Positions 1 to 23,350 of a stretch of DNA of 38,189 bases are shown here, piece by piece (the first letter of the stretch is position 1; every line of letters starts with the position of its first letter). The position numbers and the translations under genes were made by a program. Source of the DNA: Lenisia limosa. Taxonomy: Eukaryota; Protista; Breviatea. Where the stretch lies: positions 1 to 38,189 of the forward strand of contig LPNZ01010304.1 of assembly GCA_001655205.1 (NCBI GenBank), written 5' to 3'. The notes under the pieces were generated by a model. That model had not been told where the DNA came from and ran no database searches. It saw only the letters and a list, made by a program, of their open reading frames with translations.

Positions 1-3000
1 ATATCTATCACCACTCTAAGTGTTAGCCCACTGACTGCATTGCGCCTCATGACACACTTCACATTTGCTGCAGTGTTTATTGCAACTACCACAATTCTTA
101 GGGTCTTCCCAAACATCAATGCAGAAGTCTCCACAACGCTTTTTGCGATGGGCACAATCACAGACAAACTTGCCGTTTCTGGAGGAGCAAACCTAGAATA
201 TCAACCAATACTAATTGTGACGTACTTCATCCTTCTTCTTACAACACAAAGGCTCATCAATGTCCCATAGAGGACAGGGGAACTCATTGCTATTGCATTT
301 TGTCTTCTCAACACATTCTAATGATGGTAACGCAGGAAAGTTCCCAAACTGTCATTAACACAGAGGTAGCCGTCATGACAGCATTTCTTGCCGCAAACGG
401 GTTCGCCGTCAAGACATACACACATTTTACGCAGGAAGTCACAGGTCGAGTAATCAGGACATTGAAATCCACAAGTGAAGCAGTTTTGATTAGAGATTGC
501 TACACACTTGCCATGACACTCAATTTCTCCTGCAGCACATCCACAGTTGCCACTGGTACAAACTTGGGTTTAAGAGGAATTATTCTAAAGAAGCACCTAA
601 TTAACCTACTGCACTTGCCAAATTTGCACTGTTCTCCTTTTCTGCACGTCCGACCACATTTTCCACAGTTGTTGAAATTTTCAAAGAACCACTTGTATGT
701 AAGAAATGAAGCTCAAATGACGCTTACTGTTTTGCTTCTACACTTTTCATTGCATTCTTTTTTGCCGCTATCACATGCGCAACGATACTCGTAGGAAAAT
801 GAAGACTGAAGAAAGTTTAAGTGGTGAATGATAATTATTTTTTACCTTCTTCTTGCAAATCTGGTCACTTCTGCAGCAGGATCCGTCTTTGCAATTGATA
901 GCATTCTCGGGGCAATCTTCTTTACATTTACCCCAAACACATTTTGTATATTTTGGACACTGATGGCCACTGAAGGTTGTGTCAACATAATGTTAGGTCA
1001 TACCATTTGCCACAATTCTTGTCATCAGAGAAGAGTTGACGTTTTGGAACTATTGGGTAATTTCACGGATTTTTGACACAATTCTTAGCTTACTGCATTT
1101 GCCTTTGCAATTGACATAGTTACTTTTACATTTGCAGTGGTATTTACCTTTCTTCTAGCAACTTCAAACCACTTGGTGACTTACCTTTGTGCACTCCTCA
1201 GTGTCTTTGTCACAACATGTTTTCTTATCAAGACATGTGAGTTGGGAAGTCAAACATCCCTAAAAGGTAATGTATTGACAATTACAGTAGCTAACTTTTG
1301 TACAGGATCCGTTAATACAATTTTCATCTGATGCGCATTTGTTTTTGCATTTACCGCAGTTTTTATTCCATGATAAATAGGACTTAGGATTTACTACATG
1401 GTCATGGTTTTTCAAGCTGAATTATAACATACCGCATTTGCCTTGACAAATCTCATTTGGCTTGGCACAAACACATGTGTAGTCTCCCACAAAGCTACTA
1501 TACTCGCACACTTCATTTCTGAAAACAATGAAAAGGAGGGCATCTTACTTTTTACAGCACAATGTGTGTTTTTGTGGACAGATGTTCTCTCCTGCTTTAC
1601 AATTCGGAACTAATAGGATAATGATTTAAACGATAAAAGCAACAATTAGAGCGCATACCACATTTCTCCGCCTGAATACTGCAAAATTCCGTTGATCTGC
1701 AACGCTTCCCGCATCCGTAGCAGTTTTTCTTGTCAATCTAAGCAGTCACAATTATGATCAGGTGTCGATTTCAAATACAATACGCTACTTACATTAATAC
1801 ATTCACCATCACATTTGATTTGATTTTCATTGCAACGATCGCACTCAAAACTTTTGCAAACTAAATGATTAATAACAAGCAATACACATTGGGACAATTA
1901 TTCAGGTCAACAAACCACAAAAACGATCCTCGCATTTGAAGCCTTTTTCACATTTATTTCCACAGAAACCGCAGTGATCGTCATTATTGAAGAAGAACTA
2001 AGCATATTTAACGATAATAGCCGGCCTACTGGAATAGTTCTACATTTTCCTTCGCACTCTACATTGAAACCTAAACATCTACAGAAAGCTTCCTGAACAG
2101 TGACCAGAGCAAAGTACGATGATTATTCCTAGTTCCACGTTACCGACTTTTCCATTGATGAGGCACTGTTCGTCTTGGCGACAGCAAAATGTCCCAGTAC
2201 CATCAGGTGGACAAGGTTTAAGTCCCTGAGATGTGCATTCTTCAACGCATTTGCCATTCTTGCAACTTCCAGAGGGACACGTAATTCCACTGCAATATTA
2301 CGATCCAGACATTAAAACGCTAACCATTCGCCACAATTGTTCGGATCATTCTCAAATGATTTGGTTTTGACTACAGTTTACAATGGCAAAACTAATCTTA
2401 CTGCAGGTTCCACTACATTGAGTATAGCCTTCAATACAACGACAACTGTAGGCTGAACCATCCTTTATGTAAGTAACTTTGACTATCTCAAAATACCTTG
2501 TGGCACTCTTCTGAGCTTTTAACGCAACAGGTCAAACCATCACCACAAAGTGTCTCATACGGCCTGCAAATCTACATCTTTAAGCCAGAAACCTTGCCTT
2601 GCTTACTGGCTTGCAATCGCCCTCAATACAATGCGAACCCTCAGGACAGACAACACCACATTCACCACAGTTGAAATCGTCAGACTCAAAGTCGTCAAAA
2701 GACTCTGAAAATGTTATTTGACAAATTGAGAGTTGCTACTCACTGCAGTCTTCACCACAAAGTTCAAATGGAGGGTTGCAGTGGCAAATGGCATCACCAT
2801 TTTTGTCCAGAGAACATTCCGTGTTTCTTCCACAGCAAACATCCTGATCCAGTGGGCAAACCGTTTCACCAATATCTTCATCACATTCAAATTCTAGGAT
2901 TATCAACCCAAACCATTGGGCTTACTGCATAAACCATTGATGCATTCATTTGTCCCAGGGCAAACGTTCTGACAAGATCCACAGTTATTTTCATCTGTCA

Positions 3001-4252
3001 TGAAACTTTCTTCAAGAACTGGATTGTGAGACCAAAGCTTGAGGGATATTTGTCTCACCGCAACTTCCGCTGCATTCAATGTAGAGACCGGGACAAACAC
3101 AGATGGCAGGGCCAGCAAATGACTAAAAAGGAGTGAACTGTGATAGTAGTTAGCTGGTTACAAGACTTCCTAGCACCCCATTACAATCACGCATATTTGA
3201 TCTTCACGGCAGCAGAGATCAGGGTCAAGAGGACACACAACCTCATCAGAATCACACACCTCTCCAGGGGTACGGCAGTTACCTTCCCTACAAACCTAAA
3301 CAACTGTAAGACTGTTGTGACATCTTATGTCATGTGATGCAGCCTCAAACTTCTCCTTCTTTACACTGATTAGAACACGAGCCACAATATTTTGGGTTTG
3401 TCGTGACGTCAACACATCGACCAGAAGACTTACAATAAAGCTCAAATGGTTTACAGGCTTGAACAATCAATTTGCGACACAAACCGACCAGGAGGAACGC
3501 ATTTACCACTACTGCAAAACTTCCCATGACGGCAACGGTTGAAGCAGCTTCCGCTGAACATGGTATTATGATTGTTAATTTCCTTTACAATATTTGATTC
3601 TTACCATCTGTGGTTAGAATTCAATGGTTGACATGTTGTGCTTGTGTCACAAATCCCATATCCTGGAGAACAAGCTGGAAAGTGAACACAAAAGGCACCA
3701 GTTTACAAATGCATTGTCCATAGCGACATTCACTGTTGTAGCTACATTGGAAATTACAACGACCACAGTGATTCTTGTTTGTATTTGGGTTAATACACCT
3801 GGGAAAAAGGGTTGTGAAAAACAGTTTAATCAAAGTAATTTATCTTACATATCATTGCATTTCTTCAACCCGACAACGCCGTCGCATCCTGAATTATCAG
3901 AGTAAAATGACATGCAATCCTTTTACTTCTGATTGTCACAACAGTAAGACTTTACAAAAAAAGTAGTGAACTGCTCATACCATTTTGTTCACAACATTGT
4001 CCACTGATACATGTCTTTCCAACTAAAAAGTCATTTGAAATGAAGCCAATATCCCCCTCACATCCACAACTGTAACTACATGACCCGCAATTCCAGGCAT
4101 TTGTCATTGTATCAATTCCCCAACAACTCTGATCTGACTTTTCTAGGAGTAAGTAAAAACACTCTCTTCAAACTTGAAGACTTTGCATTCACTTTCAATA
4201 ACAAAATCAGTATCAATACCCATGATAGTAGGCTTGTGGTAGCCTTCATCAT
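1..4252 (-). CDS. Secreted cysteine-rich protein with at least ~12 STIG1-like repeats (C-x-D/N-x3-D/N-x2-NCG-x-C) alternating with Cys-rich spacer modules; many short introns; 3' end outside the window
   Basis: Spliced start from ATG 4252: MMKATTSLLSWVLILILLLKVNA (signal-peptide-like), then KSSKKSDQSCWGIDTMTNAWNCGSCSYSCG, CINPNTNKNHCGRCNFQC, CVDVTTNPKYCGSCSNQC, TDENNCGSCQNVC, FESDDFNCGECGVVC, ENDPNNCGEC and, near the left edge, CIDVWEDPKNCGSCNKHC. GT-AG introns of about 31-100 nt keep the frame in the portion traced. Confidence 0.85.
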
Positions 4253-5020
4253 TATCTGAAAATGAAGTAAATCTCTCGCTGTCGCACAAATCTACAGGAA
4301 TATGACTTGGTCTATTTATTGCTATATTTCACTTCTTCCACTTCTATTGTTCTTTTAGACCAGTTTTAGCAGGTTTTTTTGTTGGGGTTAAGATCCTCAT
4401 AAAAGGGGAAGGGGAGTACCTTCCTGTTTTGGTAATTGTCAAATTGCAACTAACCGAAAGCGTAATTGCATCCCCACGTTTTTTCATTATAAATAGCGAA
4501 AAGCACAACTTCCCTGTTCACCGGCGGGTCTAACTCCGATTTCATCTTCTTTTATATCTGGAACCAGAGAGGACCCGGCGGCAGATCGGGAAACAACAAC
4601 AATCCGAAAATGAACAAATAAGGAAACTTTGAGCCATGAGGTGTGTATATCTTTTGCCTTTCTATACTACCTTATACCTTATACTACCCAAGGAGGGTTG
4701 TGTGAGGTTTCTTATGGGACTCCCCAGTGCATCGGAGACTTTCTGTTTCTAGGGTGAATATACCCCCAGATTATTGAATGCATAAGTTTCAAAGTTCAAT
4801 GTGAGCAGCCCCACAAACTTGCTGCCTGTAACATAAACACAGGCGTAACCACAGGAAAGGAGGAGGAAAGAAACGAAGAGGAGAGGTGAACCCGAGCCAG
4901 TAACCTTCTCCCTTATAGTGCCCTGCTACAATAGCGTCCTCACAACGACACTAAGAAGCTGGCACCGACACCCATTTACGTCTTCCCTGCACCACCAACC
5001 TTTCATCTATCATTCGTAAA

Positions 5021-6699
5021 ATGATTGTTCTTGTGTTACTCTGTACTATCTTTGCTCAACTTGCTGGGGCGATTGTCTACAATGTATCAGGAACCCATGT
5101 TGTTGGAGATCTAGCTGTCTCTTCAGTGTCTTTCGCAGATTCCACTTCAGGTGAGAGGGCCATCATTTGGTGCAACTTTGTTTTATGGACAGGCTTTCAC
5201 CGCATAGTTGACACAGCACCACCAACAGCTGAAGAGGTCACTGCTTTGATTCAAGCTGCAGTGACACAGGCCAAGGATGAGATGAGTAGGGGGGATGAGG
5301 AGTTACCGCACTGTCTTATCTGACTGTGGTTGTTATTGATCTTTTAAGCTGAGTCCCTGATCCCGGTTAGAATGAACTTGGAAATGACTTTGGCATCATC
5401 AACGCCGTCTGTTGCTTTTGACGGTTGGTTGAAAACAATTCTAAAACTCCAGGCGGTGGGTATTTATCACATGTTTGAATATACTGGAGGTGATAAGATA
5501 CGGTGCTGCAGAAGTTTGTTTGTTTTGTTGTTCTCAACCCTTGTGTGTTTTTTTTTTCTCGCATTACCACTTCTCATCAAAAAAGGTTGGACATTAGCTA
5601 CAGGAGGTGGATCCTGTACCGCTGTTCAGCATCAAGTTGTATGAGGGATATATAATGCCATTCTCAGAATGTTGGAGAGTTTTTTTTTTTACAATTTCTG
5701 ATTACGATTGTGTTACCCCATCGAGGCAATAGTCCATATCATATACGTTCTTGTAACTGGGGTAGATTGACCGCAATGCACTACCTGGAGCGGAAACTGA
5801 AGGTTTGGAAATGTTTCTAATTTTTTTTATATTTGGGAAGGTGACATGAAATATATACCATATGATATATGATATTATAATTGTAGTTTATCTAAATACT
5901 ATACATTGATAACAATTTGTTTTCTTTCTTTTTTTATTATAACACAGGGTACAAGCTTCTCGCTTACATGAACCGCATCGCAACACATCATATCCAAAGT
6001 TTTGCGGTTTGTTTTGAGTATTCATCTTTTTTTTTTTTTTTTCAGTAAATCCGTTGCTCTTATTGTTCCAGATTTATGATATCACGTGTACAGCGACGTC
6101 CAATTTATACCCTGGACCATGGGCTCGGGTGTGAAGGATTATTGATATTTCCTCTCAAGTTTATATTATATCAAAAACTCTTGGTCCCCAGAGCCCATGT
6201 GCACATAGTGTTGTCGCTTCGCGCGATTGCACTTACCTTAATTTGCGTTGACAAACGCTTGTTTTTACTCATTACTCAGATTCCGACTTTCGGCCAAGCT
6301 AAAATGACTTTTGGAATGTTTTTCAAGAAACTGTCTGGAGATATTCGAGGTTGGTTTCGCTTTTTATTAATCAGTTTTTGAGTAATTCTTATATTTTAGG
6401 AAGTTTTGCGGATGACGCAGTTCTTGATGAATGGGTGTTGGCACTTGCCAAATATTCAGGACAGGAAAACGGCTACGATCATATTCATGCAAGAATGGAT
6501 GCTGGTGAGCGTAATCATCAGCACCTTCCTAGTGCTCTCTCTTACCTGATAGGTCAATCAGCCCATTACCTTGTTGCTCTTCCCGCTGTTGTTTATGGTG
6601 ATTTCAACCCAAGGTATGAAACTCAGTTTTTTGTTTGACACTGCCAGCCCATTTGATTGGTGGTTCTTCCCTTCATCGAATGAACGTTACGCACTTTGA
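5021..6699 (+). CDS. Secreted protein: signal peptide, helical/coiled segment, C-terminal domain resembling a phage tail-fibre distal domain; about 11-12 introns
   Basis: Spliced translation: MIVLVLLCTIFAQLAGA-IVYNVSGTHVVGDLAVSSVSFADSTSGFHRIVDTAPPTAEEVTALIQAAVTQAKDEMTESLIPVRMNLEMTLASSTPSVAFD...GWTLATGGGSCTAVQHQ-IDRNALPGAETEGYKLLAYMNRIATHHIQSFAIYDITCTATSNLYPGPWAR...IPTFGQAKMTFGMFFKKLSGDIRGSFADDAVLDEWVLALAKYSGQENGYDHIHARMDAGQSAHYLVALPAVVYGDFNPSPFDWWFFPSSNERYAL* (TGA 6697-6699). Terminal exons are phase-consistent; the junctions near 5424-5490 and 6130-6210 are uncertain. The gene call is solid; the homology is from recall. Confidence 0.75.
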
Positions 6700-6793
6700 C
6701 GCCCTAATTATTATTATGCTAATGAGCATATTATATTTGTAGCACTGTTAGTTGAGTTGATATGTATTGACTTTTACTAACCGGTTGCCACCA

Positions 6794-9626
6794 TTATATT
6801 GGCTGTTGACCCCCAACCAGGTAGAAGTGTATGGAAGCCCTGTTGATAAAACCGATGGTCAAGATGAGACCAAGATCCAGATTAAGTATGTAGTTTTCCT
6901 CCAAGAGGGTTAGATATTGGACTATCAGAGTGAGAATGACGTTAGGGCCACTACATTATCACTGAGTCTACTACTATTAACCTATTAACAAAAGGAACCA
7001 CTATCCTCACATAAAATATATTTGGTATTAAACTATGTATGCTGGGGAGGCACGCAGAAAATTGTGTGCATCGAGTTGTAAATTATTGAGTGAACATTAT
7101 ACTATAATCCAATATCTCTTTATAATCATGATGGTGTGGACGACTTCGGCCAGATACATCCTTATTGTTTTATTTCTCATTGCTATATTATACTATATGC
7201 ATATATGTACGTACATATATCGATATAGCATGATTTGTTTATGATATCTACATAGTATATGTATATACTATCTGATATATAGTTTATTACATGTCGATAT
7301 AGTACATAGATGTACATAGTATCATGTCCAGATAATACAAATAAAAGCTATTTGAAAATGAGTTCAGCAGTGGCAACAAAATGTTTGCCTGTGTAGGCTC
7401 TCATTCCGAAATGGATATAGCCCCAAGAAGAGGGGGTCAGAGTCTGAGGGGTAAAGGTCAGAAAGACTTCACCTGAAAGCAAGGAAGCAGCACCCACTTG
7501 TTCAAATGAAGCCACGTTGACGTCATAGTTATTACTAATGAGCGTGTTACATCCGGCTGAGCAACTGACAGTGTGGTCCTATTTTAGGGTCAGATTACAT
7601 CAACAGCCCAAATTTGGTAACTCTTTACCCAAGGCTAATTCTAAACCCTACATCATAGTGATAGTGAATGGAAGAGTTTTCATTCGGGTTAGAACTGAAT
7701 TGGAAAGCAACACCAGGACTTGAGGTAGACACTGGATGGGTAAGAGTGAGACAGCTGAAAATAAAAATTGAACAAATACATGTATTATACAAATGATATA
7801 TACATACATATTATTACAGTATGTTTTTTACACAATTAAAGGGATCACGTCATACTTGGTTCAAAAAAAAAAAAAAAANNNNNNNNNNNNNNNNNNNNNN
7901 NNNNNNNNNNNNNNNNNNNNNNNNNNNNNNNNNNNNNNNNNNNNNNNNNNNNNNNNNNNNNNNNNNNNNNNNNNNNNNNNNNNNNNNNNNNNNNNNNNNN
8001 NNNNNNNNNNNNNNNNNNNNNNNNNNNNNNNNNNNNNNNNNNNNNNNNNNNNNNNNNNNNNNNNNNNNNNNNNNNNNNNNNNNNNNNNNNNNNNNNNNNN
8101 NNNNNNNNNNNNNNNNNNNNNNNNNNNNNNNNNNNNNNNNNNNNNNNNNNNNNNNNNNNNNNNNNNNNNNNNNNNNNNNNTGGACAGGGATATTGATAAC
8201 ATAAAGATATGACATGATATGTCAAGAGATATATTTTTATGGCACCAGAGAGAATCCCTTGTAACATCCTCTCATACCAAGGTCATTAGTCGCAACAATC
8301 AGATGGACCGCTATAAGAGGTTAGTTATGATCATAAATAGAGTATTTCCGTGTAAACATTTGAAGCGAAATTGTCAAGATATTTTGTTGTGTTTGCCAGT
8401 CTGGACCCACTTGTAATATGGACCCGTGTGTTAAAATCAAGGCCACAGCCACAGTGTGTTGTAGGGGGTGAGTCATCAAGACCACAATTGTAAGACAAAT
8501 TATCTGATGTGTTAGACCTTCTCAAAAATCAACTTAAAATAGTGACATAGACATAGTATAAAAACTATTTGCAACAGGGTCAAGGCCACTCACGATCAAC
8601 ATAGGATATGTCTCTACAAGTAGAAGAAACAAATCGATCCACTGTTCCTTGAGATAGTCTACTCCAGTTTTCTGTAAGGTGAGAACACAGTAATATTATC
8701 CAAAAGATTGACTTGTTAAGTACAAATTCCCAATATCATGAAAGCAATCCCTCCAACCTCCTAATGTGGCATGGCTAAAGCAGTCCAACTCATACATATC
8801 AGCTACATGGTGAAACTATTTATTCGTGTAATGAATCGTATCGCAAACGTCAGAAACGGAAGCACCCCTACAGTCAGGATTGCCGAAATTGAAGAGTCCG
8901 ACTGTTCCGGCTGGAAGGTCTGCACAGCTTTTTGCTGCTTAGATAAGATCTTCATATCAAAAGGATACTCAAGGGGCAAGACCCAACCTTGGTACACTGA
9001 CGGAAGTTGCCACTTTGCAATAGGGGTACCTGTGCATTCCACAGAAACCTGGTGGTAAGATGTTCAACAAATTCCACCAAGCAAAATACTCCTTCCTATC
9101 TTACAGTTGAGTTGGCGGCAAAGCCACTCGAAACACCTTGCACAGCACAATTTTGGAATCCCAACACGTTATCATAGGAGTCACAAGTAATGGCCAGGTA
9201 TGCATGAGAGGGCAAGGTATGACAAACAAGGTTGGAGTTCTAAATCGTCATTGGAAGGCTTGAAATATTCCTTCATTAACAAAGTAAAGTATCCCAACTT
9301 ACCAAATCCACTTGAGTACTCAAAGTATTGAATGCTGACTAAAACTGTCAAAATAGACCTATGTATGTACTATTTATAATCTAGTCTTATTAATACACTA
9401 CTATATCATATATGATATATAGATATATATATATATATATTATATACATATGATATATGATATTATATATAAATATCACAAAAATAAGTTGACTGCAGTC
9501 ACAATAAACAATAAACAACCCAAGGCCTTCGGAGGAATTATCAAACACTCCCTCCAAACGTAAGTTACTGGACTGCTTGGCACAGAAGGCCGGTCCACAA
9601 TAGAGACCTCGAAAAGCATCTCCCCT
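6794..9626 (-). CDS. Multi-exon beta-rich protein of unknown function; spans two gaps, start not located
   Basis: Exon-like segments bounded by GT/AG: GEMLFEVSIVDRPSVPSSPVTYVWRECLIIPPKALG; NSNLVCHTLPSHAYLAITCDSYDNVLGFQNCAVQGVSSGFAANST; VSVECTGTPIAKWQLPSVYQGWVLPLEYPFDMKILSKQQKAVQTFQPEQSDSSISAILT; ENWSRLSQGTVDRFVSSTCRDISYVD; CLTLTHPVSTSSPGVAFQFSSNPNENSSIHYHYDVGFRISL; putative last exon GPNVILTLIVQYLTLLEENYILNLDLGLILTIGFINRASIHFYLVGGQQPI*. No family recognised. Confidence 0.55.
7066..7151 (+). repeat. Dispersed repeat family B copy (ends in atgatggtgtggacgacttcggcc)
   Basis: gagttgtaaattattgagtgaacattatactataatccaatatctctttataatcatgatggtgtggacg is shared with 37732-37810 and 38109-38189. Confidence 0.75.
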
Positions 9627-14936: not shown

Positions 14937-17307
14937 ATGTTTGAACGCGACAGCAGCGTACCCGAAGTGAGTTGCGAAGCCTTCTATGTTCCAAAATGTG
15001 TTATTTTATACAGAAACAAGTATATCTAAAGGCAAACATTTCAAATACTTTCACTTAACTCTTTTCTCAGGAAAGGAAACAACCAGGTTCTGATCTCACC
15101 TGTGATGCTGTTCTCTTTCAGAAGGTCTTGGAAGGGGACGCTGACCTCGTTGTCATGGAAATGAGTGTAGGCTGCGCAAGTTTCTTTCTCTTTCTTTCTC
15201 TGTATGTTTGCTGACATTTTTATAGTTGTCGGGAGTTCTCCCGAGTCGAATCAAAGTAACCATTGATGATGATCAAGTCTTTGTTGATGCCGTTCGTGGT
15301 CAAGCAGTCGAAAAGGAAAAGAATGATTATGTTTATAAAGATGAGGTGGGGGAAGGTAATGCCGTACTTGGCAACTACACACTTACCCTTTTAGATTTAC
15401 CATGGAAACATCCTGAGACAAGTTGAATTACTACCTGGTCTTCAAGGGAACCTTGCAGCTACCTCCTTTCACAATGTGGGAAATGTATTGAAGCATGTCA
15501 ATGTATTGAAGCATTCCACTCTTATCTATTGAAGCACACGAGTTGTACGACAAATTATAAAATGAAAATTCAATATCTCTTTTGAATATATTGAACAACC
15601 TATACCTTCTTTTTATGTCCCATTTCAACATATTGCCAAGTCTTTCAATAAGCTGAATCTTACCTAATAGATTGTCTACCTAATATTGATACTACATTAG
15701 GATTATTCCGTTAATTGAAGTGGTTGATTAGTATACGCTTCTTACTGTTTCGATACAGGGTATTCTCAGAGTTGAGATTCCTCGAGTTGCACCTCCAAAA
15801 ACCCGGCCACCTCAGGAAAACAGAAAAACAGATGAAACTCTTGAGGTAGGGAGAAACACTTTGATAAACTTTGAAGCAGGCTGTAAATGATAAAAGTGTG
15901 TGCTGTTGGTCATCGATATCGAATCACTAATACTCACAGGTGATAACCGGGAGTTGTCTGGGAGTATTAGACCGAGATGTTTCAGACGATGCTGTTGTTG
16001 AATGGATCTGTGCTGGAGTGGACCCTGGTACCTTCACAGCCTCCATTGAAGGAAATACACTGAGCATGAAAGGTGGGTGAATACTACAATGGACACCATA
16101 GTACATGTATCATGTGTTACTGTAAAGTTTTTTGTTCTTAAAGTAGTTATATTATGTGTCACATCATAGGCAAGATTCCGCCTTTCCAAAATCCCACCGT
16201 TGCCAAAGATGATGGCACCACTTTGGTGTCGGGGATAACTAGGGGTCCTATTGAACAGACGGTTACGCTTCCTTGTCTGACTTACCCTGAAAAGGCTAAA
16301 TGTGAGAGCTAATTAACTTTGCTCTGTGGATGAACATGCGACTTCGTGTGCATCGCGAAATCCTGCCCCTTTTACACCGCAGATTCTTTCATATCAGGGA
16401 GCCTTATAGCCGTTCTACCGAGGCGTCTCCCCCCTCTTCCGTCCCTTTCTGTGTTTTTGTCTCAAGAGGTCCAACGGTACGTCTAATACCATAAACTATT
16501 GTCTTGAAATTTTGTATGTGGGGGAATGAAGCACTAGTAATCCCCATAATTTGGCTTTCAATTGCTACGACAACAAAGCTAAGACCTCGCTACTATGCCC
16601 TCATTTTCTGGTCTTTGTTCTCATTCAGTAGCGAGGCATTTTTTGGCTTCCTCGGCATTTCTTCTCCTCAGAATGGTAGGACAGCCCTTGAATTTGAACC
16701 TCCATTGCAATTTTCTTCTTTTTTCATTAATCAGCCCAAAACTGTGCACGTTTCCTGGCGGCTTTCTTGGAGTTCACGAAAGAAGAACGTTTAGAATTTG
16801 CTAAGGAATTAGCAAGGAAAATGATGGATTTGTACGTCAAGCCAGATGGAGAAAAGGTTGGTCAGTTTGCATTATTTTCATTCCCTAAACAAAACTCGGT
16901 GTATCATCATCAAATAATACAACTGTATTTATTTTTCCCCGTGAAACCCTAATTAAATCCTATGATATGCTGTGCCAGTATCACTACTAATATAATTTGG
17001 CTTTAGATGATCAAGTGTCCAGAACCCCATAGAAACACCTGCATATTTGACTACACACGTGTGGAGAGGGAACGTGGTGAAGCCATCCCACATGTATTAG
17101 GGAACTATGTGATCACCTAGCTACTACTGTCTTCGATTGTATTGTTTTACTTCTTAGGGTGTTTTCAAGCCTGTGCTCCCACACGCTATCGAAGCCGTTC
17201 GGGGTGGTGGTACTCTTCTTGACGGTCACGGTCTTGAGGGTTCTCCGTACCTTGCATTTGCTTCTTCAAAACTCTATAGAACCCTTCATCGAAGGAAGCC
17301 TCTCTAG
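14937..17307 (+). CDS. Fusion protein: two tandem HSP20/alpha-crystallin domains followed by a C-terminal RGS domain (start may lie further upstream, at or before 14820)
   Basis: Phase-consistent splicing. ACD1: VLEGDADLVVMEMSLSGVLPSRIKVTIDDDQVFVDAVRGQAVEKEKNDYVYKDE|IYHGNILRQVELLPGLQGNLAATSFHN|GILRVEIPR. ACD2: DAVVEWICAGVDPGTFTASIEGNTLSMKG|...RGPIEQTVTLPCLTYPEKAK..YQGALIAVLPRR. RGS-like: SLSVFLSQEVQR|SEAFFGFLGISSPQN|AQNCARFLAAFLEFTKEERLEFAKELARKMMDLYVKPDGEK|MIKCPEPHRNTCIFDYTRVERERGEAIPH|GVFKPVLPHAIEAVRG. Stop TAG 17305-17307. Confidence 0.75.
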
Positions 17308-21390: not shown

Positions 21391-23350
21391 TTAGCCCAAA
21401 CCATATTTACGCCTCCCTCCATTTTGCTGTCAATATGAGAGGAATAACAATTGGACAAACTAGCTTTTCATATTACAAATAATCACGAGAAATCAGACCA
21501 CATTCATACCGTTTGTCGAAGATATCTGATTCGCTTGTTGCTGAACCAATTGTTGAGCTGAAGCTGGGACTGAAGGGTGTTATTGAAAAACGCAAAAAGG
21601 TGACGGGCAGTTTTTTTTTAATAAAAATCCACCTTACCACATTGGCATCAATGCAGAGTTGATTTTTGTCCCTTTCGTTAGGATAGGGCATATCAAGGTG
21701 AGCATAGAACCAATCGTTCAGAATGTCACTTGTCCTAAGTGGTGAGCTCCTGATGTAGTCTGTCCACCCATCAAAAGAATGTCTACGAAAAACTAGTTTA
21801 TATTTTCTTTCTGGATCATCATATTTCCTTGAAAATACGGCCTTTGCCACTCACTCTTTTGGCAGGTTTCTTCTTCTCCTAGGTCCATCATCGTCTAAAG
21901 TGTAAATGGGTTTTCAAATGACATAGTAAAGCCACGAATATCACATCAACCACAAAACATCACAAGAAACACTTCAGTCCCCTCCCAACCTTTATCCTTT
22001 ATACCCATTGCCACTTCCTCCAAGCCTCTTTTGTAACGAATTCGGCGGTTTCCGAACCAGTTATTGATTTGGGCTGTCGTCTGAGAAGGTAATCATCCAC
22101 AGAATGCTCAGATGCCCCTATCTCTGTGTTTTCAACAAAGTAAGGTAATTATGTATTGTTAGAGGTGTTAACATACCCGCCCCCTACGCATTCAGCCTTT
22201 TTGGCAAGCCATTTCTTGGTCTCATCATCAGGGTAAGGCGATTCAATGTGCCCCAAAAACCAGTTGTTCAAAGTCTATAGAAATCAGTTGGCTGATATCG
22301 CAAAGTTTCCTTCATGAGATCAACCAACCTCAGTTGCATGCTTTGAGAGGGTTTTTCTCCCAGTGGAAACAGTTTTCTTTTTAGCTGCAGGACTGACCAT
22401 TTTCGGTCCTCTTGCGATGACAGGAACTTTCGCTCTACAACTCGTTATTTTATTATTGACTAAAGGTAAATAAATTGAATCAAAAAAACAAATCTGATGT
22501 AAACCCCACATTATGGACACACCGCTCACCTGATAGAAACGAACTCATCCGGCACGCCCGCTCGAGGAATTAAACGAGGGTCGCATTCGTACTGTTTGTC
22601 CAAGAGCTGAGGAATTAGAAAAGATGAATCACTCCATAGCTAAGTGGGATATCATATTATGATGATATATTATGTTTATCACAAGTACCCCATGTCTTCA
22701 TTGCCCAATCGGCGGCTCCAAACCTTAAAATCTGTACAATAATGAGGGACATCGGTGCTGATATCGAAATCATGAAGATCTTCCAGAGTATCAGCCTGCT
22801 GCTTACTAAAGGTGTCAGCTAAATCAGCAAATTTTTTGAATGCGAATATGTAGAAATAAGATGTATAAAAAGGCTGGACTATCCGGACACGATCTTAAAC
22901 AAGTTGGTTAGAGAGAATTGTCACGGATTAACGAAGATTTACTTTCCGTGACGTCATATTTTCCTAAAAGCATAATTGTTGTTCTCTTATCTCAATAACA
23001 ATTACTTCTATACTATATTGCAAGTTACGCTCGTTTACAGTTATTTTTGTCCTTCAACCGAGCCAGGTTCTCCAACGCAACCTGCTTTACACCGCTACAT
23101 GCGAATAGTAAACCAGTACCACCTTGTTGCAGGCTTTCTTTTCCTTGATTTTTCAGTTGGCTCCACTTCCATCCACTCCATATCATCATCCTGAGATAAT
23201 GAGTACGCAGCTACATTTGGAAGGCTAAAACAGCATTTCAGAAAAAAGAGTACAATTCCAGCTCACAACTCGCATTTTCCGTCTTGTCCTGTAGACTTTA
23301 CTCCAGTCCGGCGGCTCAGGGGAGTCTTCATCTTCTGGTGGATACTTCAT
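21391..23350 (-). CDS. Transcription factor with two tandem PBX-like TALE homeodomains; 5' end uncertain (may extend to 26070)
   Basis: HD1: GRKTLSKHATE|TLNNWFLGHIESPYPDDETKKWLAKKAEC|TTAQINNWFGNRRIRYKRG. HD2: RRRRNLPKE|TSDILNDWFYAHLDMPYPNERDKNQLCIDANV|SQLQLNNWFSNKRIRYLRQT|QNGGRRKYGLG*. Both carry the TALE PYP loop and the PBX-type N(K/R)RIRY helix-3 signature. Confidence 0.9.

Follow-up and report, generated by a model that had tools for sequence, protein, structure and literature searches.

A gene on a 38,189-nucleotide (nt) contig of the breviate Lenisia limosa (LPNZ01010304.1; the whole contig is called the window below) was found to encode a protein whose C-terminal half is related to a family of phage proteins, phrog_8748. 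The gene lies at positions 5021-6699 of the + strand and is made of 11 exons separated by 10 GT-AG introns of 34-162 nt. Its 777-nt coding sequence specifies a product of 258 amino acids (aa). The N-terminus of this protein is hydrophobic; a single long helix follows, and the C-terminal part is modelled as a beta-sandwich. Homology of the C-terminal half to phrog_8748 is well supported by profile comparisons; the family itself, judged from gene fusions and gene order, is the distal domain of P2-type tail fibers. We consider it probable, if well short of certain, that this half of the protein derives from a fiber distal domain of the type represented by gp25 of Vibrio phage VP882, that it was transferred from a marine gammaproteobacterial phage, prophage or bacterium, and that the present product is exported, oligomeric and binds a bacterial surface. 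An initial annotation, made from the letters of the sequence, had proposed such an origin; its gene observation is confirmed and its interpretation as a whole is supported, with the caveat that the match is limited to the C-terminal half, that few of the family's conserved positions are kept and that the donor may have been a phage or a bacterial secreted protein with the same domain.

A spliced nuclear gene

The transcript was found in a publicly available polyA RNA library that belongs to the study behind the assembly. A 990-nt RNA contig aligns on positions 4856-6747 with 0 mismatches. Its joints, all of the GT..AG type, remove the intervals 5151-5207, 5286-5348, 5424-5585, 5639-5765, 6129-6279, 6350-6399, 6505-6552 and 6614-6647. 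One further interval was skipped by the aligner as a repeat; it contains an extra exon, 5948-6006, which was placed by GT-AG sites, an open frame and exon lengths that sum to exactly 990 nt. Positions 1-4855 have zero coverage in the same polyA run. Because these 4.8 kb are silent there, the RNA contig represents a transcript and not DNA carry-over. The same upstream segment is without a long open reading frame, an upstream neighbor of the gene being silent or absent over the whole 4.8 kb.

The exact RNA contig bears out the spliced eukaryotic gene called at 5021-6699 by the initial annotation. GT-AG splicing had been seen correctly, but the count of "about 11-12" introns was too high. The C-terminal peptide that had been spliced by inspection, from MTFGMFFKK to ERYAL, coincides exactly with residues 171-258, and the transcript keeps the C-terminal motifs, which a different splicing pattern could have destroyed. 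The product of an independent Trinity transcript, EukProt EP01086_Lenisia_limosa_P006470 (258 aa; hereafter P0002), is identical to the window product at 257 of 258 positions, N253S being the sole difference. It was retrieved by HMMER with a 70-aa in-frame piece (window positions 6402-6612) and was taken as the reference sequence in every protein analysis. The transcript is laid out as follows (UTR, untranslated region):

4856..5020, + strand: 5' UTR, as far as the RNA contig extends; transcription may in fact begin further upstream
5021..5150, + strand: exon 1, aa 1-44; hydrophobic N-terminus at aa 1-17 (nt 5021-5071), a putative signal peptide; NVS sequon at aa 21
5208..5285, + strand: exon 2, aa 44-70, defined by RNA joints; the long helix begins here (aa 51-78, nt 5228-5374 across intron 2)
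5349..5423, + strand: exon 3, aa 70-95; end of the helix, poorly modelled linker and start of the predicted beta-sandwich (about aa 93, nt 5417)
5586..5638, + strand: exon 4, aa 95-112, defined by RNA joints
5766..5802, + strand: exon 5, aa 113-125; sequence-level homology to phrog_8748 begins (aa 124, nt 5799)
5948..6006, + strand: exon 6, aa 125-144; motif ..LLAYM....HHIQ, aligned with EILTAMG....HFQP of the family
6072..6128, + strand: exon 7, aa 145-163, from the transcript-based exon model
6280..6349, + strand: exon 8, aa 164-187; motif T..(F/Y).KLSG.I.G
6400..6504, + strand: exon 9, aa 187-222; motif.EW and G-Y-D-H-I-H (Y212-H216, nt 6474-6488)
6553..6613, + strand: exon 10, aa 222-242; motif LPAVVYG
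6648..6699, + strand: exon 11, aa 242-258 and TGA stop codon; motif W-W-F-F-P-S; homology stops at aa 253 (nt 6681)
6700..6747, + strand: 3' UTR, to the end of the RNA contig

The possibility that contaminating DNA from a bacterium or phage, or a fault of the assembly, accounts for the locus was rejected, and we put its likelihood at next to nil. The splicing of ten GT-AG introns from a polyA transcript excludes contamination; the G+C content is 35% in the introns and 46% in the coding sequence (41% in the window); and the transcript was assembled independently in EukProt. What speaks for an artifact is the state of the scaffold, which is broken by 16 N gaps, the nearest of which (7879-8180, 1.2 kb downstream of the gene) parts the gene from clearly eukaryote-type genes. 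Because this gap intervenes, it is scaffolding that connects the gene with the eukaryote-type genes at 14937-17307 and 21391-22440. The locus is a genuine eukaryotic nuclear gene.

Homology of the C-terminal half to phrog_8748

A search of the PHROG library with P0002 returned one significant match, phrog_8748, listed as of "unknown function" (E = 6.3e-6, 27 bits). The match is collinear, aa 170-246 of P0002 aligning with positions 164-246 of the 261 in the profile. A weak tblastn match (E = 5) in a plasmid of Photobacterium toruni pointed to a protein of 242 aa. This protein is itself a clear phrog_8748 member (E = 1e-18), and its gene is situated among tail and baseplate genes. In a BLASTP comparison P0002 and this phage-plasmid protein are 27% identical over 111 aa, and they have in common the motifs K-(L/V)-S-G-x-I-x-G, D-x-W, Y-x-H-x-H, P-x-V-V-x-G and W-x-x-P-S. 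The family was sampled from this seed (16 proteins, VP882 gp25, 13 IMG/VR loci, 16 bacterial genome loci and 7 metagenome loci). When a hidden Markov model (HMM) of 38 bacterial and phage members, the query left out, was applied to P0002, it gave 30.5 bits; the best of 2000 shuffled sequences reached 9.0, and the reversed P0002 sequence stayed below that best shuffle. Aligned by hhalign, residues 124-253 matched family positions 98-231 over 124 columns (probability 93.4%, E = 2.5e-7). Thus the likeness to phage tail fibers that had been proposed in the initial annotation is significant in each of these profile comparisons. The motif order given there, too, is that of the family alignment (..M....HF; T...Y/F.KL.SG.I.G;.EW; GY.H.H; P..V.G; W..P).

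P0002 is 22-33% identical to all members, and its best pairwise scores are with the stand-alone phage or prophage form of 240-250 aa. It resembles phrog_8748 proteins such as VP882 gp25 (YP_001039836) in length (258 aa against 238-256 aa) and in layout, an N-terminal helix followed by a beta-sandwich, as well as in the succession of E..(I/L)...M, T..(Y/F).K(L).SG.I.G, W, Y.H.H, G and W..P. It differs from them in that its gene stands in a eukaryotic nuclear locus and has 10 introns, in having a hydrophobic putative export signal where the phage protein has its N-terminus, and in that the locus has neither an adjacent chaperone gene nor a tail module. When the two small downstream phage proteins (fiber chaperone-like) were compared with the window by tblastn, only chance matches were obtained.

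Could the phage similarity be due to chance or convergence, the gene being a lineage-specific orphan? Identity is only 22-33%, a Pfam scan of P0002 gave nothing even at E = 10, and tblastn with the full protein and with the 70-aa read-through piece gave either no match or chance matches only among 50,697 phage records. However, the three independent profile tests are all significant, with shuffled sequences far below, and five motifs occur in the same order with the same spacing. Chance similarity was rejected on these profile statistics and shuffle controls, and we regard it as very improbable. Exact-peptide scans of IMG/VR with the query alone were blank; a PDB sequence search and NCBIfam yielded only noise; and single exons, scanned against Pfam and PHROG, were too short to give a useful result. 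Membership in the tail collar family PF07484 and in PF12571, the N-terminal domain of P2 gpH-type fibers, was rejected since neither Pfam family matched P0002.

phrog_8748 as a tail-fiber distal domain

VP882 gp25 is the prototype of the family (phrog_8748, E = 5e-87). In VP882 the genes are ordered as homologues of baseplate V/W/J/I, gp21, gp22, gp23, gp24, gp25, gp26 and tail sheath. The gp21 protein carries a PF12571 "phage tail-collar fibre protein N-terminal" domain (E = 4.6e-9), gp24 is annotated as "tail fiber protein", and gp26, of 68 aa, matches phrog_4912, "tail fiber assembly" (E = 1e-7). In prophages of Thiotrichales and of Cysteiniphilum litorale (L029:5605-6651) the phrog_8748 domain lies directly behind PF12571 in one polypeptide. 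In the fusion of a Thiotrichales bacterium (L030:5776-6645) PF12571 and phrog_8748 score E = 1.8e-9 and 7.9e-11, respectively. Judged from these fusions and from VP882 synteny, phrog_8748 is the distal domain of a P2-type tail fiber, in agreement with the assignment made in the initial annotation, and a PHROG listed under "unknown function" gains a role. A literature search for the identifier phrog_8748 found nothing.

Members occur in prophages and phage-plasmids of Vibrio, Photobacterium, Pseudoalteromonas, Marinomonas, Zooshikella, Thiotrichales and Caedibacter. The expectation that the family belongs to P2-like prophages of gammaproteobacteria thus held for Vibrio, Photobacterium, Pseudoalteromonas, Marinomonas and others, but Pseudomonas, which had also been named, was not seen among the members. 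The Caedibacter example is on the phage-derived 51K plasmid pKAP of Caedibacter taeniospiralis (L022:5698-7218), where a 506-aa protein has the phrog_8748 domain at aa 120-330 together with tail-fiber segments and a Gp10_C domain; its gene is downstream of a major head protein gene. pKAP is the R-body plasmid of a Paramecium endosymbiont, so that a family member is present in an obligate symbiont of a protist.

The domain also ends bacterial proteins of 339 to about 1000 aa, found in a proteobacterial metagenome-assembled genome (MAG) and on two metagenome contigs (L027/L038:5524-6543, L036:1990-3543 and L037:592-3597). Repeats of the G-N-V-G-I-G-T type are present in L036 and L037, and N-terminal signal peptides in L027/L038 and L036. 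The neighborhood of the MAG locus, L027, contains no phage hallmark. These proteins suggest that bacteria, too, may have co-opted the fiber tip. They also raise an alternative for the L. limosa gene, namely that its donor was a gene on a bacterial chromosome that encoded a fibrous protein, secreted or exposed on the surface, with this domain at its C-terminus, the transfer being from bacterium to eukaryote. The architecture of the long proteins and the non-phage surroundings of L027 favor such a donor. Yet P0002 scores best against the stand-alone form, has its length and its helix-plus-domain layout, and matches collinearly a PHROG profile that is itself only 261 positions long. We hold this alternative to be unlikely.

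Predicted structure

AlphaFold 2 (AF2) failed on the single P0002 sequence (predicted local distance difference test score, pLDDT, 36). On an alignment of P0002 with 37 family members (A4) it gave a model with a pLDDT of 68 and a predicted template modelling score of 0.57. The helix at aa 51-78 is modelled at pLDDT 80-86 and a beta-sandwich at about aa 93-250 with block means of 75-88. The helix named in the initial annotation is thus present in the model, but the C-terminal domain, put there at "~190 aa", is smaller, its beta-rich part covering some 160 aa.

The best match of the predicted monomer among solved folds is a phage protein, chain E of the baseplate of Pseudomonas phage JBD30 (8rk3; residues 173-380, Z 10.1, 157 residues, root mean square deviation 3.4). 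It stands clear of the next rows, at Z 7-8.3, which are carbohydrate-binding modules (CBM4, CBM22, CBM29 and CBM11) and the C-terminal domains of the CBA120 TSP4 and K2-2 TSP tailspikes. The top fold matches in BFVD are tail fibers and tail proteins, several of them annotated as CenC-like carbohydrate-binding, and a shape search of the Atlas placed a viral cluster first (template modelling scores 0.45/0.56), followed by CBM_4_9-bearing hydrolases; CBM_4_9-bearing proteins are among the matches in both collections. Cupins with H-x-H metal sites also appear among the fold matches, at Z 6.8-7.5. On this model the domain would be a CBM-like beta-sandwich.

Going by chain length and the published description, 8rk3 chain E is probably gp54, the JBD30 receptor-binding protein. 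Its "foot" domain is a wedge-shaped sheet with a helical spur, resembles both sugar-binding domains and the CBA120 tailspike, and has been proposed to bind O-antigen (PMC11445458). The modelled P0002 domain shares with the foot a wedge-shaped beta-sandwich with a flanking helix and the same CBM and tailspike neighbors; the two are only 15% identical and are without a sequence-level relation. With CBM4/9, CBM22, CBM29 and CBM11, which have a galactose-binding-like, CenC-like sandwich, the likeness is in the overall fold (110-128 residues aligned at Z 7-8.3); there is no Pfam match, and at such Z it may reflect nothing more specific than a common sandwich.

Origin and divergence

In a maximum-likelihood tree (LG+C20, 141 shared columns) the P0002 branch measures about 10 substitutions per site; it is saturated and has no supported sister. 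The nesting among phage sequences for which a phylogeny had been suggested was therefore not recovered, and neither a donor clade nor a date can be given; nor does the tree decide for or against a bacterial donor. Two word-indexed searches of 5.8 billion proteins, one with the whole sequence and one with aa 150-258, recovered nothing besides P0002, though eukaryotic relatives were not sought by a deep profile search. A HMMER search with the 70-aa piece against 1.84 billion representatives returned only the protein itself and repeat junk. No broad, vertically inherited eukaryotic family, a finding that the initial annotation had named as refuting its proposal, turned up in these searches. P0002 is provisionally taken to be lineage-specific among eukaryotes. 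With its ten introns, the difference in G+C content between introns and coding sequence and no eukaryotic relative found, the transfer appears to be old and into this lineage, and nothing points to a flow from eukaryote to phage. Of the ancient phage-to-eukaryote transfer claimed in the initial annotation, the age is upheld by introns, divergence and G+C content; the donor is better described as phage or bacterium.

We suppose that the domain was acquired horizontally from a phage, a prophage or a bacterium of the marine gammaproteobacterial pool. In the time since, 10 spliceosomal introns and an N-terminal export signal would have been added, the composition of the gene would have come to resemble that of its host, and the sequence would have diverged almost to saturation.

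Several points weigh against this origin or against the function proposed with it. All RNA and DNA evidence derives from one study, and a search of sequencing runs found the locus in no independent study. Besides the saturated branch and the failure to match phage records at the BLAST level, only about 130 C-terminal residues align significantly (124-253 with hhalign, 170-246 with the PHROG profile), whereas true phrog_8748 members match profile positions 1-258 or 10-248. The invariant R....R..KNQ of the family N-terminus is absent, its R, N and Q being replaced by L84, T88 and P89. Of 35 positions with a conservation of at least 90% among the 37 other sequences, P0002 keeps only 11 (E124, M132, T173, K179, G183, W198, Y212, H216, L228, G237 and W246), and the C-G, H-P, G-E and R-D pairs of the family are lost. 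With 24 of 35 positions changed, the binding function may itself have changed or been lost. The AF2 model depends on the family alignment and so represents the family's fold; it is not independent evidence on the eukaryotic protein. Finally, the same domain ends long bacterial proteins that have their own signal peptides and, in one case, a non-phage neighborhood, so the donor need not have been a phage.

The conserved positions bear on a further alternative, in which the origin from a fiber tip is the same and the function has been repurposed. The protein would then serve the organism's own surface or matrix (adhesion, cyst or glycocalyx) or would be a metal-dependent, cupin-like protein acting through the retained H-x-H. 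The 24 changed positions, the very long branch, the H-x-H cupins among the fold matches and the lack of a fiber chaperone homologue in the window are in line with this possibility. On the other hand, core motifs are kept, including K-L-S-G, W198, Y212 and H216; the phage baseplate chain, probably the receptor-binding gp54, is well above the cupins as a fold match; and a putative export signal fits an extracellular binding role. We judge a repurposed function to be rather unlikely, if somewhat less so than a bacterial donor.

Possible role of the protein

Under the favored reading, that of an exported, bacterium-binding protein derived from a fiber tip, the hydrophobic N-terminus would direct export. 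Residues 2-17 have a mean Kyte-Doolittle value of 2.4, and there is an A-G-A motif that resembles an A-x-A site; a signal peptide, and hence secretion, is probable, with the reservation that it was judged by eye from these two features. The helix at aa 51-78, standing in place of the N-terminal coiled coil of the phage protein, may oligomerize the product, probably into trimers, as far as a monomer model can suggest. The beta-sandwich would bind a bacterial surface polysaccharide or another surface structure, the binding of bacterial glycans being the putative function. The secreted trimeric lectin for bacterial glycans that was envisaged in the initial annotation would unite these features. 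Capture of prey, the holding or choosing of epibionts, and defense are possible uses.

According to PMC12453579, which cites Hamann et al. 2016, Lenisia limosa is an anaerobic breviate that feeds on bacteria and carries Arcobacter epibionts, and Vibrio is abundant in breviate microcosms. Such bacterivory, epibionts and Vibrio-rich microcosms make the organism's ecology fit the reading of P0002 as an exported protein that binds bacteria. More specifically, the breviate might use P0002 as a phage-derived surface recognition device that holds hydrogen-scavenging Arcobacter epibionts or catches gammaproteobacterial prey. This proposal is speculative and, as it stands, quite unlikely; were it true, a partnership between a eukaryote and bacteria would be mediated by domesticated phage receptor-binding proteins.

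Gene transfers from bacteria and phages to protists are well known. Phage-type lysozymes and, in insects, the cdtB/APSE toxins are established cases of transfer to eukaryotes. The L. limosa gene resembles such cases in that a phage or bacterial gene would have been taken up, furnished with introns and expressed. The cases known to us are enzymes or toxins, whereas here a domain for host recognition (adsorption) is concerned: what would be new is a phage fiber tip, a module that recognizes bacteria, retained in a protein that is expressed from an intron-rich gene and probably exported, by a protist that depends for its living on the bacteria on its surface and in its food. In a literature search, co-option of a tail-fiber tip domain by a eukaryote was not found described. 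If the domain still binds bacteria, it provides a definite molecule with which to test how bacterial partners or prey are selected or retained by a simple eukaryote, and receptor-binding proteins would join the phage parts that eukaryotes have domesticated.

Additional observations

The Photobacterium toruni plasmid that provided the family seed, pCECT9189-2 (L001, 67 kb), carries an integrase and a full tail and baseplate module, and by its gene content looks like a phage-plasmid. Within the tail module is a gene for a 310-aa "chemotaxis protein" (phrog_20948), a designation that is probably a misnomer. Thiotrichales bacterium 19X7-9 has at least 5 copies of the family gene on five scaffolds (L021, L023, L024, L025 and L028). 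Their open frames begin without an ATG upstream of the conserved region; they may start at a non-ATG codon or be reached from the preceding gene by translational coupling or frameshift.

Inside intron 3 of the L. limosa gene, beside a run of Ts, positions 5515-5549 are covered by hundreds of contigs of the DNA run. Summed word depth is about 37,000 there as compared with 32-35 in the flanks, and a variety of loose ends is present to either side. In appearance the stretch is a short dispersed repeat of very high copy number, or else a low-complexity element.

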